DNA from: Dimorphilus gyrociliatus
Taxonomy: Eukaryota > Animalia > Annelida
Assembly: GCA_904063045.1 (NCBI GenBank)
Contig: CAJFCJ010000025.1
Span: forward strand, 248,001 to 312,000
DNA: 64,000 bases
Reading direction: 5' to 3'
Shown: piece after piece, positions 51,920-61,362 of the stretch
Layout of the letters: the number at the start of each line of letters is the position of its first letter
How positions within the stretch are numbered: position 1 is the first letter of the stretch
Position numbers and translations under genes: made by a program
The notes under the pieces: model-generated
Databases searched by the model: none
What the model saw: only the letters and a program-made list of their open reading frames with translations
Told to the model about the DNA's origin: nothing

Positions 51920-54703
51920 TTATAGCTTTGTAGTAGGTTTACTCATTGGCTCGTAAGTAGGTACATAGGCATCCGAATAATAGTTTGTCGCTAACGATAC
52001 TTGATTAATTGTTGACGGTATTTCATTTCTATATTCTTCTTCACCGCATAATTTTAAATTGCAGCTTCTCTTATTAATTTTTAAAATGATGAAAATCAGT
52101 ACCAAAATCAAAATTGTTGGGGAAATATAAAAGATAATTATTCTATAAGTTCTCCTTTCGTGTAAACCAATTATATCTGTGGAATAGAATTACAAAGTTT
52201 TAGGTTTTTACTCAAGAACGCATTCTTCTCCTACGCTGCCTGCAAAAGCCAGTAAGTGCAATAATAAAATTGAATATAGTGCCATCTACCGTACAAACTA
52301 TTGAACAATATTAGCAGCGGTTAGTAAACTGTTACCGATCAGCTACTTCAAAGAAATAACGTTTTCAGGGATTCCTGGTACGAAAGAATTACCATTTTCA
52401 GATAATCTATTGGTGTATTACAGAATTGGTCAGAGGCAAAAACTCAATCAAATTCTAGCGCAACATTGAAAGAAACTTGATGAAATTTATTAGAAGATCT
52501 TTAATTCAACTAAAGTCTTTCTCCATGATCGTAAAGGTGTAGTTAAAATGATACATAGTGAAGATAAGTATCCAGAGAGAGACACAGTATCTATACAAAA
52601 ACATTGGAAAGTTTGGATAGCATTGAGCATATCCTTCAGAATGATGGCAAAAGTTGGTGGAATCCTTACAAAAGATTATGTTTGTTAAGTTCCTGTTTAA
52701 GTACAAATCAAAGTTTCATTTGGAATGCTATGAAAAAGGACCGTAAAGTTACAGATATGGCCGAGAAATATACTAAAAAGATTCTGAGTAGCAAGAACAA
52801 ACATAAAGGTCTTATCAAAATTCTAATAAAACGTGGACTATCTGATCCTAATGCAGCTTCAATATCATCTAATTTATTGGGAGGTGAAATTGCAGAAATC
52901 CCACGCAGCTTATCATTTCTTCTCTATAGTTTGGCAAAACACACTGATAAAAAAAAGTTGGCTGAGAAGATTCATCATGCTCTGAGTAATGAACTTTGAC
53001 ATTTGATAAAATTGATGAAATGAAATAGTTGAAAGCTTGCTTAAAAGAAAATCGTAAAATTTTCCATCCAATCAGTGAAGGTACCACTAGGAAGGTTCCT
53101 GAAGATCTAACCCTCTGCGACGACAAACTTATCCAAACGAACTTCAGCTGTTTGGAATTCTGAAACTATTTCAAAGAGTACTGAATATCATATCTTCCTA
53201 AACCAGACAAATTTTTACCAGAAAGATGGCTTAGAATTGGCGATGACTCGGATGTTTTACACTCTTTGGTTCTGATAAACGAATGTGTAGTGGGAAGCAA
53301 GAAATTTATATGGCAGTGGTGAAATTACTTTACGCCTTCAGAATTGAAGATGGCGTCAACTTAAAACAGTTATTGATTTTTTTTTAAAATCAGATCGTCA
53401 ACTAAATTTCAGATTTATCGACAAAAGAAGATAAAAAGTTTTACTAAAAGAAAAAACTTGATACACTCTCTATTGTTGAAAAAAGAGAAACTAATCATTA
53501 TACTAATTCAATGAGAAATTAACAACTATTTTTAATGTAATTCAATGTCAAATAAAACCCAAAAAAACTTAAAGGGCGTCACTTTGATGAAATAAGCTAA
53601 AAAAAACAAACTCAAAACATATCAACTCACCATTTTTTGCGGTAGTTATATGGTAATCATATTTATTCATAAATGAACTAATCGAAATAGAATATGTCAT
53701 ATATTAAAAGTATTACATGAATAGGAACATGTTATATTACCTATCAGCTGTAAATTTGAATTGATTAATGGGATTATTAGTGGTTGAAGGTAAACAAGTC
53801 ATACTGTCATTTAATACAAGCAATCTACTTAAAATGCACATTAATTTCCCCACGGAGTAGCATAACTTCTTTATTCTGTTATAATTACTTGTACATTTAT
53901 TACTTTCTTCGTCGATAATACACATATTATCGGTCTTTAATAATTTAAAGCGATCTTTACATATTACCCTTCCATCTCTTAAACAATGAGTATCTTCTGT
54001 AAAGTAGCCCATACACCTACAGTTGTCACCGTAATACTGGATATTATTTCGAGTTGTACAAAAAATCTTTAATTATTTTTATAAAATTATTAATAAAGTC
54101 ATAATAATAGGAATTTGATTTATCAACTTTATATGATATAATGATAAATGTATCCATGAACATAAGTATCTTCCGTGATTTTGACCTTCTTTGGTATCTT
54201 AAAGGATGAATTTTATAAATAGTTTCCCACGATTCGCCATTTAATTTCGTGCTAAAAAGGAATTAGTTAATTAACTATTTATCATAATTAATTAAGCACT
54301 CATATATTACTTTAATGTGTCTAATCGAAATTTTAAGAATAATTCCCTATGACTTTCAGTTTCAATACGAAACGGACCATGTATTGTATCGAATTCCGAA
54401 TTAAAATCAATAACTGTTCCATAAGTTCCTATGGTTCCATTCGAATTGAAAAGCGGTTGACAACTTCGAGTATTCGACATGAAAGATGAACAAACATGAA
54501 AGGCGTTTAAACATATTTTATTTTTCGGTACTGTACAAGAGTAAATAAATATTTAGTTTATAAATATCTAAAAATAGCAAACCTTTTTGACATCCAAATC
54601 TTGATTCACTTGATATTAACTTAACAATATTTAATTCAACAGTATACATTGATGCATTTAATTTAATTAAGGTAAAAAAATAAAGATAAGCTATAATCGT
54701 CAT
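51920..54703 (-). CDS. Divergent Delta/Serrate (DSL)-like type I membrane protein: signal peptide, C2/MNNL, two DSL-like modules, TM and short tail, no EGF repeats (about 362 aa)
   Basis: complement(join(54703..54583,54530..54311,54251..54128,54066..53741,53677..53631,53596..53569,52142..51920)), phase-consistent (1089 nt). Signal MTIIAYLYFFTLIKLNA; MNNL-like VELNIVKL..CLNAFHVC..ISYKIFC; DSL-like C..YYGDNCRC..HCLRDGRVIC..C; TM IIIFYISPTILILVLIFIIL followed by KINKR; ends PTTKL*. The two small stalk exons are the least certain part (one intron is only 34 nt, or 49 nt with the alternative acceptor at 53582). Confidence 0.75.
52279..52291 (-). promoter_or_regulatory. CTCF-like motif (reverse complement cggtagatggcac)
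   Basis: TAGATGGCAC core, immediately 5' of the CYP pseudogene. Confidence 0.35.
52340..53360 (+). pseudogene. Mitochondrial-clan cytochrome P450 pseudogene, intronless, nested antisense in the Delta-like last intron
   Basis: Fragments read TFSGIPGTKELPF, SEDKYPER, NDGKSWW, SFLLYSLAKH (I-helix), MK*LKACLKE (TAG at 53026-53028 in the K-helix), PDKFLPERWLR and FGSDKRMCSG (heme motif, about 53265-53294). Several in-frame stops and frameshifts. Confidence 0.88.
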
Positions 54704-55406: not shown

Positions 55407-58400
55407 CTAGGATAGATAGGACATTAACTTTCTAACAGCATTAGAAAGATCGCATGATTCGAAAATAATTAGTCCTGTTGCATTTGTTACGGATAAAACT
55501 GCCAGCAAAGCCAGGGGAGATGAAATACCGTAGGCTATTACACAGTCAAAAGAATCGTTGGACATCATAATATCATCTACTAAACCAACTGTTATTGAGC
55601 GTTTACTTTCAATTTCATCATTTTTATTACTGATAGACTTGATGTTAATCATTAAGCCGAGATGCTTTATTATATCTGAAATGATGTTGTCATTTTCTGT
55701 GGCGAAGATAATCTTTTTGCCGTTGGACGATAACTCATACAATATCAAAATCAAATACGCTAACCTCTCTTCTACAGACGTTACTAAATTTACATAAGAA
55801 TTAATTGGTGGAATATCTGGATGACAGCAAGTAGAGTATTTTTCTTCACCCATTATTAATCTATTCAAGAAGTTATTACCAGTTCGAGGTAAGAGTTTCA
55901 AACTAGTTCTTATCCCTCTTACTCGAACTGGTCTAGAGAGAAATTCTATGCAGGAAACGCCACTATCCAAATGGCCATTTGATACTTTAAATTGAACAGT
56001 CATCAATTCCCCGTCTTCCATGACGTTGTCGACAAATCCATGACAAACTGACAGACCGTTGACTATGCAAACTAAATCATAACCATCTCGTTTGACGTCA
56101 CTAGCCGAAACTATAGGCAGACAACGGTCCAAACACCATTTTTTTAGTACAGTAATTTTAGCCTCATTTTTTCCAATTACAGTGACGGGAATTCGTCTGA
56201 CAAGAGCGGAAATACTAGAACGCTTTGTCACTGCTTCTCTGGCTCCTAGCTCGTCCACAAATTTCAATAATTTATTTGAAAAATATTCTATTGTCCCAGT
56301 TTTTGGTTCAGATTCAATTTTTTCAACAAAACATGAGCCAGGAGCTGATAAATGTTCAATGCATACATGAATAGATGGTGTTATTTTAACAAGTTGTATC
56401 TTTAAATCGGGTAAGAAAGATTCAGTAAATCTTAACTGGACGGTAAAAACAGATCCTGATAGTATTACCGCACTAAAGCTAATTGGATCAGAACAATCCT
56501 CTCCATCCACTACAACATCGTCAACGGATACTGTACGAGCACGTTCATCGTATTTCGCAACAGCAGCTTTAGCCTCAGAGAGGACATTCATGACTTTTCC
56601 TCTGTCCTCTCCTCTACCAACAATCGAATATATTAACTTCCAGTATAAATTACCTGGTAAAATAACCATATTCAAAATTGGATTTATCTCAAGTAAATTT
56701 CCTGCTCGAGGCTTTAGCCTCTGGGATTTGAAATCGAACACACGTTTATTCCACTTTAATAGACGTCTTCCGACTGCTATTTCTGTCATATCTAACACTC
56801 CAAGATGATCTAGTTCAATATAGTATTCTTGTTTATGAACATAGAATACTAAACCATTATTATCCAATCTAACGATAGTTGCTGATGCTAAGACAGAATT
56901 ATTTGGAGATCGAAATCTTTCCCTACAAAATTTATATGTTTTCAAATTTATAAGTGAGCTAGTCGCTGCGCTACATAATTCTTCAAAGTTCAAAGAATTA
57001 TCAGCATTATTAAAAATTCTTTGAACGCAAACGTCAAAATAATTACTACATGGCCTCGTACAACTTGTAATATTATTTACTCCATATTTTTCATTCCAAG
57101 TAATAGTATTGTCACCCGAAATGTAAAATTGTGGAACAGCAGTCTTTGCAAATTGACAGTAAGCGTAACAAGAAGTTGGGATATTTTCAATGTTCATTAT
57201 ATCTGTCAGTAAAAAGTCGTTACGTTGAAAAGTTTTCTTCCAAGCTTGCCTTTCTACATAAACAATATCCATTTTTTCCCGATTATTTCCCAAGCATTTA
57301 CAAATTGATTCACACCGACAAACCAGTCCTTGAGGTAACAAAGAGCGTTTTAAAACAATACAATGGGGTAACAAATTTGAAAATGTATGTCGTAACCGCT
57401 CATTGTCACTAGACCTTGGTTGAATAAGACGTGGAATATTTTTACCCATTTTTAAGACATAAATATTTACGGCAATCTCCAATTCTTCAACAAGTAAATT
57501 TCGTCTTTGATTTATTACAGAATTTCCCAGGCGGTTAAATCTCCAATGATCTGCAATCTTTTATAAGGAAAATTAAAAAACTTACAAGTACTAAAACAAA
57601 AGATATCAAACTTTATAATACTCTGGAGCAATAGACTCGCAGATGGTATCAATACAACAAACTGTTTTCTTATCAACGTCCATTCTTATAATTTCAAATG
57701 TTTTGTGATCTATTATAAACTCAAAGCTGAAGCAGAAAATCCGTTTGCCATTTGTAAAAGTAAAATATTCTTCAACTAAATTCCTAGGTACAATGTAGCG
57801 ATTCTCGGCCGTCATAAATAAAGTCCTAGCATAGACATCTAATTCCGAATGAGGGGGTATACACAAAGAAACGTCTGGCACGTGTAAAGTTAAAGAGTAA
57901 TCTGAAGCAAATTCCCTAAAAGAAATGGCTAATTGCCCATCAAGGGAACTATAACCAACTACAGCCTTGCTATCTTTATCAATTTGAAATTTTGGCTGAG
58001 ATTGTAAATTGTAATTTATGAAGAATAACTCATCTAGTAAATTTAACTGATCAGAAGTTGTTTCAGGTGATTTTAAAGTTCCCACTACAATTCCAATATA
58101 ATTACTAATATCGTCTTTCTCAAAAAAGCCCACACATCTGACGTAAAATAACATATTCTTTTGCCAAGGAACGTATTCTTTAAAAAATATTTTACCCGAT
58201 ATCATTATATCGAAAACAGCCACCTGTTCAGAAGATAAATTATAAAAAACGAGCTTAATTTATTAGAAATATTTTATTTCTAAAAGATTAAGATTATCTT
58301 ACCTCGCTAGGTGAATTTATATATTTGTCAAGTTGAAGTAATCGTATTCCAGGTACTTTAAATGGTTGAGCCATAGCAAATTGATTATCCTTCGATAACT

Positions 58401-60620
58401 GACAGACATATGTGGGAAGATTAGCAGTTCTATAGCCTTTAATAATACTAATGACTTCGCAACGATCTTCTTCTAATTTTTTTACTTTTGCAATATCTCC
58501 TATATTCCTCAACCTTTTAGGATTATTTATCTTCAAAATGGAAAAAGAATCATCAAAAGGAATCGCCCGAATCGATCCAAATTGATCCATATCTATTATC
58601 GCTGATATCCCCCTGTCGTTTTCACAGGGAATATCTTGTACCATAGGATAATCTTCGCTGTTATTAAGAACTCTTTCGTTTTCTTTTTGATCGTTAATAA
58701 ATTGAAAGTCCTCTTTAACATTACTATTTAAAATCAACTTTCCACAGTCGTTCTTAAGAACTTTAACATGAGAAAGTAAATCAGATACGCTTTTTAAATA
58801 GTAAATACAATGACGATCGGATCTTCGAAGGCATTCTGTGACTATTTTATCATTATCACTTTCTACTTCTTTTGTACTGTTTAGTGATATTTTAATAAAT
58901 TCATTAAAATTAATTCCTTCGTTGCTCAACATTAAAATCCAAATTTTCTTTTCTAACTCTGAGTGAGCCATTTGACAATCGAAACCATAAGGACATGGTA
59001 CGTTAAACACATACATTTTTTGGGCTATATCTAACTGGCAGGTTGTACTATACATGTAACTTTCACACATGCCTACTTTGTGATTAATTTTCACTTGATT
59101 AGGTAAATTTCGTATGACTGTTAAGCAATGACTATCTTGCATCAGATGACCTAGAGTATTAAGCAAAAAATAAGTGAATAATTAATAAAAATAAAGTATT
59201 CGACAGAATTAACTTAATAAAATAACCTAGAAATTCAATTTACTAACCTAAAACAATATTAGAATTCCAATTATGTTTATTATGACAATATAGATGATCT
59301 AGCTCGCTTTGGGAACTTATTATATTAGATTTTAAGCACAATGCGCAAAGAAGAGCGAATTTTCCAGGATATTCCTTAAGAACTTTGGCAACTTGTAATG
59401 TTCTTCCATCACCAATAGGGGTAGGAAGAGATCTTGGCGATTGTATGGGTAAAATTGGTATATTACTACTTTTCCTTTCGAAATTTGGTAATTTCCTTCG
59501 AAATCCTTCTGATTGTTGAATGATAAATTTGTTAATATCGAATTCGCCTTGCTTTTCAAAACTCCATAATTCTCTTTCTGCTCGAGAATGTGCAAAGCTA
59601 CATCTTTCTATTCCTACACTACAAACGCCTTGTCCAGTAGCTTCGTGGCATAATACATATCGGCCATTAAATTGTCCATTGTCTTTTCGTTCCCTAATAG
59701 CTATCCATCTCAAAGATAAAGTGTTTTGTTCTTTAGCATCCTTCTTGTCAATTACATATAAGACATTTTGATTACATCTGTGAGAATTATTTAACAGAAT
59801 AGAGCATGATTCACAACCTATTCGAAAAAGTGACGTTGGCTCCAAAGGGAACGAAATTGGGCCACAAATCTCTTGAGATAGATTTTCAGGGTTTTTTCTG
59901 TCTTGTTGAACAAAGGTGGAACCATTAAATGATGTCTTTGATTGTGGCGTAACGAATCCTGGGACGTAGTTTTTCTCATTGTCCGTTTCATCTTGCAGTT
60001 TTAAGGAAGGTAGTGGCTGACCTAGAATATCAAAAATGTATTAAATATTAAACTAAATTAATCACATGATTAAAGAAAGAACTGAAGACTTACCGTTATA
60101 ATATCGTTTGACATCACGAAGTACATCCTGAATTCTTAAAAGGCCTTTTCGTTCTTGATTCCAAAAAAAAATCTCAACATGCGAGTGAGCAAAAGTGCAT
60201 TCATTTTCTCCCACTATACATTCTTTTTTATTCTCATAATGCTTGCAAATTAAATACGATCCTTTATGATCCTGCAAAAGAAAAGAAATACATTTTGGAT
60301 ATTTGGTATTATAATATTAAGAAAGAGAGAGATTTTTGCTATTAAAAATCCATTAATATATAGTTTTACAGAAAAGGCAAGATTAACAGTACAATAAAAA
60401 GTACCAAGAAAAGATTAGGTCTTATTTTGTACCATTCTCCATTACATCCCTTTCTTCTGACTATTAAGAAGGCTCTGCTACAGTCGTGCTCCATGTTTTC
60501 ATAAAATTTAACGCCTCCACTTCCTGGTTTAGTTCTTACAAAACATTTCTTACAGGCCAACTTCCAGTTATAATCGTGAAAACTATCAGGTAACTTAATC
60601 GAATGTTGCAGGTGCACAAC
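55407..60620 (-). CDS. HELZ2: Highly divergent HELZ2-like protein (three ZC3H7-type CCCH modules, cold-shock domains, degenerate RNB, S1, truncated degenerate SF1 helicase), at least 1590 aa; 5' end incomplete
   Basis: complement(join(60620..60405,60271..60094,60021..59248,59150..58303,58223..57612,57557..55407)), phase-consistent; the last intron uses an AAG acceptor and is less certain. CCCH fingers CKHY..C..CTFAHS, CHEA..C..CSFAHS and CPYGFDCQMAHS. RNB-like LHVPDVS..SELDVYAR and ITSCTRPCSNYFDVCVQRIF. HELZ2-typical QLVKITPSIHVCIEHLSAPGSCF. The symbol indicates family resemblance, not proven orthology. Confidence 0.85.
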
Positions 60621-61228
60621 CTGTTGTAAGATTTATCATGAAGATATTAACATGTAAACACTTATTTAAAATGCTTATAATAATACTATTTAAAGAAAAA
60701 CCAATTGACACAAGTGTATGGTCACCTTTTCACATAAATTATATATTGTTATTCTATATACTTTTAGGCTCGATATAAAGGATATGCATACACGCTATTC
60801 TCTATGTAAAAATTGTTCATTGCCTATTGGTGCAATTTCAGAGGTCAGCTTATCTACGTATTCTGCATCTTCTTAATCACGCAGTAGCTGCTCATCAAGT
60901 AGGCTCGAGTTTCATCAGACATAAAAATTATCAAACTCTTTTCATCGACTATAAATAATAATAATAGTCCGCAATGTATTTCCAACCAGTAATGCTAGTA
61001 CACTTTTTTACTAAGCAAGTGTCTATTAAATCTCAAGAAATGATAAAATTTAGATATTCCAAAAAGGATACGAACCATTGAGAAAGACGCTCTCTGCGAT
61101 GTCATCTATATAAAATGAATTAATTGTAACTTGTCGAAAAGTCCTTATTAGATCCAATCGTCTTTCTCCATGAATTACAAAAGAAAACTTCTTTAAAAAG
61201 CCTTTGAATTTATAGTATTTTGGCTAAT

Positions 61229-61243
61229 AGCGCCATCTACCAT
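61229..61243 (-). promoter_or_regulatory. CTCF-like motif (reverse complement atggtagatggcgct)
   Basis: TAGATGGCGCT core. Confidence 0.45.
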
Positions 61244-61362
61244 ACAATATAATTTGTAGTGATATTTCAAAACTCTTCGTTTTACAACCTCTACTCTTTC
61301 TGTATAATTTGTTAATTTTTACCTATAATGTAGTTATTTTGTTGTTAAATGGTCGCCTTACA

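Follow-up and report, generated by a model that had tools for sequence, protein, structure and literature searches.

A strongly reduced HELZ2-like gene with predicted loss of nuclease and helicase activities is maintained by purifying selection

Introduction

Recent work has established HELZ2 as an interferon-induced nuclease with helicases that deliver structured RNA to the RNB domain, and its roles outside vertebrates are, to our knowledge, essentially unstudied. Here, we analyse a HELZ2-like gene that lies on the minus strand (61104-55407) of a 64-kb window of the annelid Dimorphilus gyrociliatus, meaning the whole stretch of contig CAJFCJ010000025.1 from 248,001 to 312,000, an AT-rich eukaryotic DNA with ~30% G+C. 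This gene appears to encode a HELZ2-derived protein that has kept RNA-holding parts of the family while losing its catalytic centres, and it remains under clear purifying selection. All coordinates are those of the window, and all features of the gene are on its minus strand.

The closest described systems are human HELZ2, an active helicase-assisted 3'-5' exoribonuclease (PMC10516660), and fungal Ssd1, an established RNB pseudonuclease that binds RNA (PMC8097288, PMC8934651). In human HELZ2, the D1601N mutation, affecting the third Asp of the metal site, and the S1920L and R1923L mutations each abolish the RNase activity (PMC10516660), and these mutants provide a reference against which the RNB site of the window protein can be read.

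Results

The gene belongs to the HELZ2 family by its sequence

Six long open segments (60620-55407) join into a single frame of 1,592 codons through five mapped introns, all of the GT-AG type and of 133, 72, 97, 79 and 54 nucleotides, in agreement with a first-pass annotation of the window that had counted more than 1590 open codons over five introns. The same gene is found on a 10 kb Logan assembly contig of a sister species (L001, SRR23372229), hereafter the ortholog. We searched the last exon (exon 6; 55407-57557; 716 codons plus the stop), which includes the rest of the RNB domain, an S1-like region, a stalk and 1B barrel and a C-terminal tail, with HMMER (phmmer) against 1.84 billion representative proteins. 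All matches were HELZ2-type, with one close relative (the ortholog P0001, 71% identical over this exon) and 22 distant ones (E 2e-10 to 7e-4). Scanning distant relatives against Pfam identified RNB in 13 of 13, while most also displayed OB_HELZ2 and parts of AAA_11/AAA_12. The named relatives are molluscan: a Dreissena polymorpha "helicase with zinc finger domain 2-like" protein (XP_052268696.1), a Bulinus truncatus protein (KAH9515064.1) and a Batillaria attramentaria protein (KAK7471580.1).

The upstream exons carry the other parts expected of this family. Three N-terminal zinc-finger modules match the N-terminal repeats of the Dreissena, Batillaria and Bulinus HELZ2-like proteins (tblastn, E 1e-12 to 5e-17). 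Exon 1 (60405-60620; residues 1-72), whose frame-consistent AG/GT boundaries are kept in L001, encodes the first half of module 1 and matches these mollusc repeats by tblastn. Exon 2 (60094-60271) encodes the CCCH-type finger of the same module (C-x..-C-x-F-A-H-S), with weak Pfam zf_CCCH_4/zf-CCCH matches and a tblastn match to a Dreissena HELZ2-like protein (P0050, E 5e-9), and exon 3 (59248-60021) encodes a linker, module 2 (~59531-59824) and the start of module 3, with tblastn matches to P0050 and P0023 (E 1e-15 to 5e-17). Exon 4 (58303-59150) completes module 3 and then enters an OB/cold-shock region (~58797 onward): residues 470-770 align with the pre-RNB region of eight HELZ2 relatives, covering OB_HELZ2 (hhalign probability 86%, E 5e-6, 222 columns). 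Pfam OB_HELZ2 itself gave no match in the exon scans, the OB feature being detected at the profile-profile level only.

Exon 5 (57612-58223) encodes another OB region, followed by the N-terminal third of the RNB domain. On this exon alone, the Pfam RNB match (E 3.6e-6, 26.9 bits) falls slightly below the cut-off of 29.3 bits, whereas a custom hidden Markov model (HMM) of HELZ2 RNB domains matches the spliced protein with 63.8 bits over 340 residues (HMM positions 39-386 of 400). Per-exon scans with Pfam and NCBIfam gave only the sub-threshold RNB and weak CCCH matches, and a sequence search of the exons against the PDB gave nothing useful (a weak DIS3L1 match for exon 5). Within the RNB domain, the HELZ2-type cluster C956-x-C958-x3-C962-x-C964 (57294-57320; residues counted from the first residue of exon 1, and not from the candidate 5' exon described below) corresponds to the nearly invariant columns C80, C82, C86 and C88 of a 21-sequence alignment (A3), and Cys/His positions that are conserved after the RNB domain in HELZ2 relatives are kept as well. 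Altogether, these comparisons place the gene within the HELZ2 family. The HELZ2-like identity given by the first-pass annotation thus holds on the zinc-finger repeats, the OB-RNB-S1 body, the CxCx3CxC cluster and the pre-helicase barrel described below, and the RNB fold that it had considered traceable is recovered by the Pfam, custom HMM and phmmer matches.

The RNB nuclease site is degenerate in both species

The RNB site was aligned with MAFFT and hmmalign against 18 HELZ2 RNB domains, with A-[FL]-S and H-[IV]-x-D-V on its flanks serving as anchor motifs. The metal-site segment KAVVGYSSLDGQLAISF and the signature segment ITSCTRPCSNYFD map to 57968-57918 and 57071-57033, respectively, where they had previously been placed. 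In the degenerate metal-site motif (57930-57980), D754 ... D767-G-Q769-L770 stands for D-x6-D-x-D-D: active-looking relatives read D-L-D-D-A-L-S, while the window protein reads D-G-Q-L-A-I-S and the ortholog D-R-Q-L-A-V-S, so that the third and fourth catalytic Asp are replaced by Gln769 and Leu770, and also by Gln and Leu in the ortholog. In the degenerate signature (57039-57059), T-R-P-C-S-N-Y stands for T-S-P-I-R-R-Y: alignment to the relatives and the ortholog gives S-P-I-R-R-Y in active-looking relatives, R1044-P-C-S-N-Y in the window protein and R-P-C-N-N-Y in the ortholog, and the two signature Arg positions are Ser and Asn in the window protein. The RNB domain also shows deletions compared to active relatives. 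With substitutions at the third and fourth Asp as well as at both signature positions, the RNB domain is predicted to be inactive by the best experimental yardstick available, which is the set of human HELZ2 mutants. The loss of catalytic residues that the first-pass annotation had noted is therefore confirmed, and, as both changes are found in the ortholog, it is older than the split of the two species.

Degenerate RNB sites recur among HELZ2-like relatives

Among the 18 relatives with the Asp-cluster region, D-x-D-D is kept in six and the third and/or fourth Asp is substituted in 12, a frequency that is biased because the sample consists of the proteins most similar to a catalytically dead query. 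In these 12 relatives, which include P0016, P0023, P0050 and P0018 and among which are the three named mollusc proteins from Dreissena, Bulinus and Batillaria, a changed Asp cluster is often accompanied by a changed SPIRRY signature. Such RNB-degenerate relatives retain helicase domains with an intact GxxGxGK[ST] motif; the locus of P0018, for example, has a large OB-RNB exon with AAA_11/AAA_12 exons on both sides (L004, 1-15324; a contig of ENA ERZ26052449). An RNB tree groups eight degenerate relatives in one clade with 83% support. This survey shows that a degenerate RNB site recurs among the HELZ2-like paralogs of invertebrates, and it suggests that a nuclease-dead HELZ2 subfamily may be widespread in molluscs and other spiralians.

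In the same tree, the window RNB domain sits on a very long branch (~2 substitutions per site) with 66% support for its nearest neighbour, and we assign it to no specific dead HELZ2 clade. The window protein shares Gln at the third Asp position and an x-N-Y signature with P0020 and P0023, which hints, without our claiming it, that catalysis may have been lost before the helicases. What distinguishes the window gene is the further loss of both helicase motors.

Both helicase motors are missing and the stalk and barrel of helicase 2 are kept

Between the zinc fingers and the OB/RNB region, where helicase 1 (AAA_11/AAA_12) would be expected, neither Pfam nor tblastn gave a match, and there is no room for it because exon 4 runs without a break from zinc-finger module 3 into the OB region. 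Tblastn with six helicase-bearing relatives detected no helicase segment in the window (64 kb) or on the ortholog contig (10 kb), and a regular-expression scan of both orthologs found zero [AG]x4GK[ST], GK[ST] or hhhD[DE] motifs anywhere. Since no Walker A, GK[ST] or Walker B motif exists in either ortholog, a canonical P-loop ATPase activity is excluded. No second RecA lobe is present either.

AlphaFold was run twice, on the barrel plus tail (7 sequences) and on the whole of exon 6 (21 sequences). The exon 6 model has a mean predicted local distance difference test (pLDDT) score of 68, with values >85 for much of residues 220-550. The S1-like and intermediate beta-rich region that follows the RNB domain (56358-56903; pLDDT 80-94) matches DIS3L2 and Rrp44: model residues 33-391 align with DIS3L2 597-858, which is the C-terminal part of its RNB domain plus S1 (Z 8.4, 198 residues, root-mean-square deviation (rmsd) 6.8), and with Rrp44 757-1001 (Z 7.8). 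Next comes a UPF1-type stalk with a 1B beta-barrel (56357-55854; pLDDT ~90), the accessory N-terminal part of helicase 2: using VIA-align, model residues 401-568 correspond to the stalk and 1B barrel of Sen1/SETX, with residues 402-559 matching Sen1 1125-1304 (Z 8.2) and residues 449-540 matching UPF1 322-414 (Z 6.1, rmsd 2.2), while hhalign matches the barrel region to the pre-helicase region of the Dreissena relative P0010 (E 3.8e-5). The best Foldseek match of the exon 6 model is the yeast pseudonuclease Ssd1 (E 5e-5). These structural Z values are middling when taken alone, yet the predicted folds agree with the sequence evidence.

In place of the RecA1 domain expected for helicase 2, the protein ends with a 148-residue tail (55410-55853) that contains no P-loop and no DE, is 76% identical to that of the ortholog and is followed by the stop codon at which nucleotide conservation ends. 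A Pfam scan of the tail to E 10 gave no match, hhalign against the HELZ2 helicase 2 core reached a probability of 0.4%, and no helicase turned up in a PDB profile search, the weak hits of which are membrane proteins. The tail has a pLDDT <50 in both AlphaFold runs, with a low-confidence secondary structure of strands alternating with helices. One MAFFT run sets the segment KIIFATENDNIISDI on motif Ia of the relatives, and the location of the putative Walker A and B differs between three alignments. The first-pass annotation had read VTSVEERLAY as the Walker A position and VIAYG as the Walker B position; given the disagreement of the alignments and the lack of profile or fold signal for a helicase in the last 148 residues, we do not retain this assignment, although its statement that GKT, DE and a second RecA lobe are missing is correct for both orthologs. 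On the basis of its position, the tail can reasonably be regarded as a putative stripped RecA1.

In at least 10 relatives, the open reading frame (ORF) is broken or an intron occurs just after the barrel motif ...EWI..x..R, and helicase 2 is encoded by later exons. The possibility that the tail arose by read-through of a former intron was rejected for its first part because, in full-length relatives, the following exon still aligns with the sequence just past the ancestral exon boundary; the last ~90 residues may have arisen in this way.

Thus, 'doubly dead', as the protein had been called, is right in effect, but 'pseudo-helicase' is an overstatement: helicase 1 has been deleted outright rather than degenerated, which the first-pass annotation had missed together with the good preservation of the stalk and 1B barrel, and these are the only demonstrable parts of helicase 2.

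The gene is under purifying selection in all its domains

By blastn, positions 60737-55405 of the window align with L001 at 73% identity, and alignable DNA stops at the stop codon. In L001, each acceptor and donor of the five mapped introns (10 splice sites in total) is likewise AG or GT, and the two proteins share 72% identity, with only one gap column across 1,592. The proportions of nonsynonymous (pN) and synonymous (pS) differences are 0.15 and 0.69, giving an uncorrected pN/pS of 0.22 and a Jukes-Cantor-corrected ratio of nonsynonymous to synonymous substitution rates (dN/dS) of ~0.09, which is only approximate because dS is saturated, but is far from the value near 1 that a lack of constraint would give. 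The ratio is low in each region, with 0.07 for the zinc fingers, 0.11 for OB, 0.11 for RNB, 0.09 for the post-RNB part and 0.17 for the barrel; in the C-terminal tail, pN is 0.13 and pS is beyond saturation. In the zinc-finger region (residues 1-480), 36 of the 40 Cys/His are retained in the ortholog. A word-indexed search for more orthologs returned none beyond the one already found.

Purifying selection is thus clear across all domains, which agrees with the earlier description of the protein as a maintained pseudoenzyme. Considering the 1,592 open codons, the conserved splice sites, the single gap and the low pN/pS, the gene is to all appearances a working protein-coding gene and not a pseudogene.

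The 5' end and the surroundings of the gene

A longer contig of the sister species (L002) carries an ATG exon that ends with ...PKASSLI, with an identical donor (gttcgtat), ~480 nucleotides upstream of the same acceptor. A candidate first coding exon with this donor is found at a similar distance in the window (61075-61104; MTSQRASFSM), so that the gene likely has seven coding exons and ~1,602 codons. An alternative upstream ATG exon near 60920 was ruled out by its wrong phase and a stop codon. In the window, the gene accounts for four of the nine ORFs of at least 130 residues, including the 2.1 kb exon, and its introns are merely 54-133 nucleotides long, an exon structure that stands out from the rest of the window.

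About 130 nucleotides upstream of the candidate start, a 131-nucleotide block (61231-61361) is 75% identical to positions 806-934 of L002, while the adjoining non-coding DNA is not alignable. The block contains stop codons in the frames of the gene and has no Rfam match, and a Rfam scan of the window found nothing; it could be a promoter element, a 5' untranslated exon or another regulatory element.

On the other side, a cytochrome P450-like sequence on the plus strand (52359-53428) lies in convergent orientation to the HELZ2-like gene, and its syntenic counterpart in L001 is an intact 464-residue, single-ORF P450 gene (7435-8829, minus strand), whose best named match is from Dimorphilus gyrociliatus (40% identity), followed by molluscs, a brachiopod and annelids. 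In the window, the P450-like sequence consists of pieces in different frames with 36-49% identity and poor coverage of residues 105-310, and it may contain introns, be diverged or be decaying.

Discussion

The explanation that we favour, with a probability of roughly 0.6, is that this ~1,600-residue protein is derived from HELZ2 by reduction to its RNA-holding parts and acts by binding RNA without catalysis. Neither RNA nor ATP would be hydrolysed, and its CCCH fingers and OB/RNB/S1 surfaces would hold single-stranded RNA or RNA 3' ends, as in Ssd1. Bound target RNAs could then be sequestered, marked or translationally controlled, and these targets might be viral or transposon RNAs that are also under attack by catalytically active HELZ2 paralogs, while the conserved tail would probably serve as a protein-interaction or structural module. 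Several points weigh against this explanation: D754 and D767 survive in the window protein and the ortholog alike, leaving two of the four Asp in place; an Asn at the second Asp does not inactivate human HELZ2 (PMC10516660), so that a reading of the motif is not infallible; synonymous sites are saturated between the orthologs (pS 0.69); and a recognisable ortholog was found in only two species.

As a more speculative extension, the window gene may be the most reduced member of an old spiralian subfamily of nuclease-dead HELZ2 proteins that serve antiviral or transposon control as RNA sensors or regulators devoid of catalysis, in which case it could be a pure RNA-binding adaptor with a tail that brings in or blocks active HELZ2 paralogs or further decay factors. 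We propose this only tentatively.

A related possibility, to which we would give rather low odds, is that the protein has no RNA clients of its own and is a regulator or decoy of active HELZ2 paralogs, tuning HELZ2-mediated RNA decay through protein contacts of its barrel and tail or through competition for RNA targets. Two observations speak for such a role: conservation of the tail (76% identity) equals that of the zinc fingers, and full-length relatives have similar zinc-finger modules. This possibility nevertheless overlaps with non-catalytic RNA binding and does not exclude it.

It is unlikely that the C-terminal tail is a membrane anchor that tethers the RNA-binding module to an organelle surface. 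Residues 1545-1578, which end 14 residues before the C-terminus, do form the sole stretch with a 19-residue Kyte-Doolittle average >1.5 (peak 2.05), and the weak PDB profile hits of the tail would fit a membrane protein. In the ortholog, however, the peak is 1.71, which is within the 1.5-1.75 range of soluble HELZ2 relatives, compared to 3.2 for a true transmembrane segment in the same set; moreover, S, T, N, T and G residues interrupt the middle of the stretch and AlphaFold draws it as strand-helix-strand.

We consider it very improbable that the protein is still an exoribonuclease with a non-canonical site made of D754, D767 and other acidic residues. The two retained Asp and the tolerance of human HELZ2 for Asn at the second Asp (PMC10516660) speak for such a site, but the third Asp, where a change to Asn alone kills the human enzyme, is Gln and the fourth is Leu, the signature positions that we take to be those of human S1920L and R1923L are Arg and Ser, and the RNB domain has deletions compared to active relatives. 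Just as doubtful is an incomplete gene model, with helicase exons lying further downstream or used in an alternative isoform. The exon break after the barrel in at least 10 relatives would make this conceivable; yet the downstream helicase exons that the first-pass annotation had named as a refuting finding were found by tblastn neither in the window nor in the ortholog contig, the stop codon has the same position in both species with nucleotide similarity ending there, the syntenic convergent P450-like gene comes next, and helicase 1 would need to sit within the continuous exon 4. Finally, the idea of a pseudogene in decay with a fortuitously open frame, which the loss of catalytic motifs and of whole domains might have suggested, is effectively refuted by the 1,592 open codons, the conserved GT-AG introns, the single gap column despite saturated synonymous sites and the pN/pS of 0.22.

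On the favoured explanation of a non-catalytic RNA-binding protein, this gene indicates that the HELZ2 scaffold can stay under strong constraint after the loss of all three of its enzymatic centres. Together with the survey of relatives, it points to a HELZ2 body used for RNA binding without catalysis or for regulation, in parallel to fungal Ssd1, and it offers a small, naturally occurring construct with which to study recognition by the zinc-finger and OB-RNB-S1 parts alone.

The first-pass annotation had considered this gene the strongest candidate for an undescribed system in the window, which is too strong, since RNB pseudonucleases such as Ssd1 are established and degenerate RNB sites are common in invertebrate HELZ2-like proteins. 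Our literature search found no description of nuclease-dead or helicase-less HELZ2 relatives, its incomplete coverage making this weak evidence of absence. Compared to the HELZ2 family, the window protein shares, in the same order, the zinc-finger repeats, the OB/cold-shock region, the RNB domain with CxCx3CxC, the S1-like region, the post-RNB Cys/His positions and the stalk/1B barrel; it differs in that helicase 1 is absent, RecA1 and RecA2 of helicase 2 are replaced by the 148-residue orphan tail, the Walker motifs are gone and catalytic Asp and Arg residues of the RNB site are lost. With the RNB-degenerate spiralian HELZ2-like paralogs it has Asp-cluster changes in common, but these paralogs keep the helicases that it lacks.

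Compared to active RNase II/R, DIS3, DIS3L1 and DIS3L2, the window protein has the same cold-shock/OB, RNB and S1 architecture, but the D-x-D-D metal site and the substrate-contacting Arg of the signature are missing, and zinc fingers and what is left of a helicase are joined to this body. As expected for an RNB pseudonuclease, it combines a kept RNB fold, lost catalytic residues and purifying selection. The Ssd1/Sts5-type proteins (PDB 7am1), which derive from Dis3L2, likewise have conserved RNase II-family folds devoid of catalytic residues, and Ssd1 aligns structurally with the exon 6 model at Z 6.3; an alternative RNA-binding site and a channel blockage have been described for Ssd1, whereas the likeness seen so far in the window protein is one of fold and residue loss. 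The origins are independent, the window protein stemming from the HELZ2 and not the Dis3L2 lineage, and it adds CCCH-type zinc-finger arrays and a helicase-derived barrel. Thus, rather than a new kind of system, this gene is a strongly reduced variant within the HELZ2 family and the RNB pseudonucleases.

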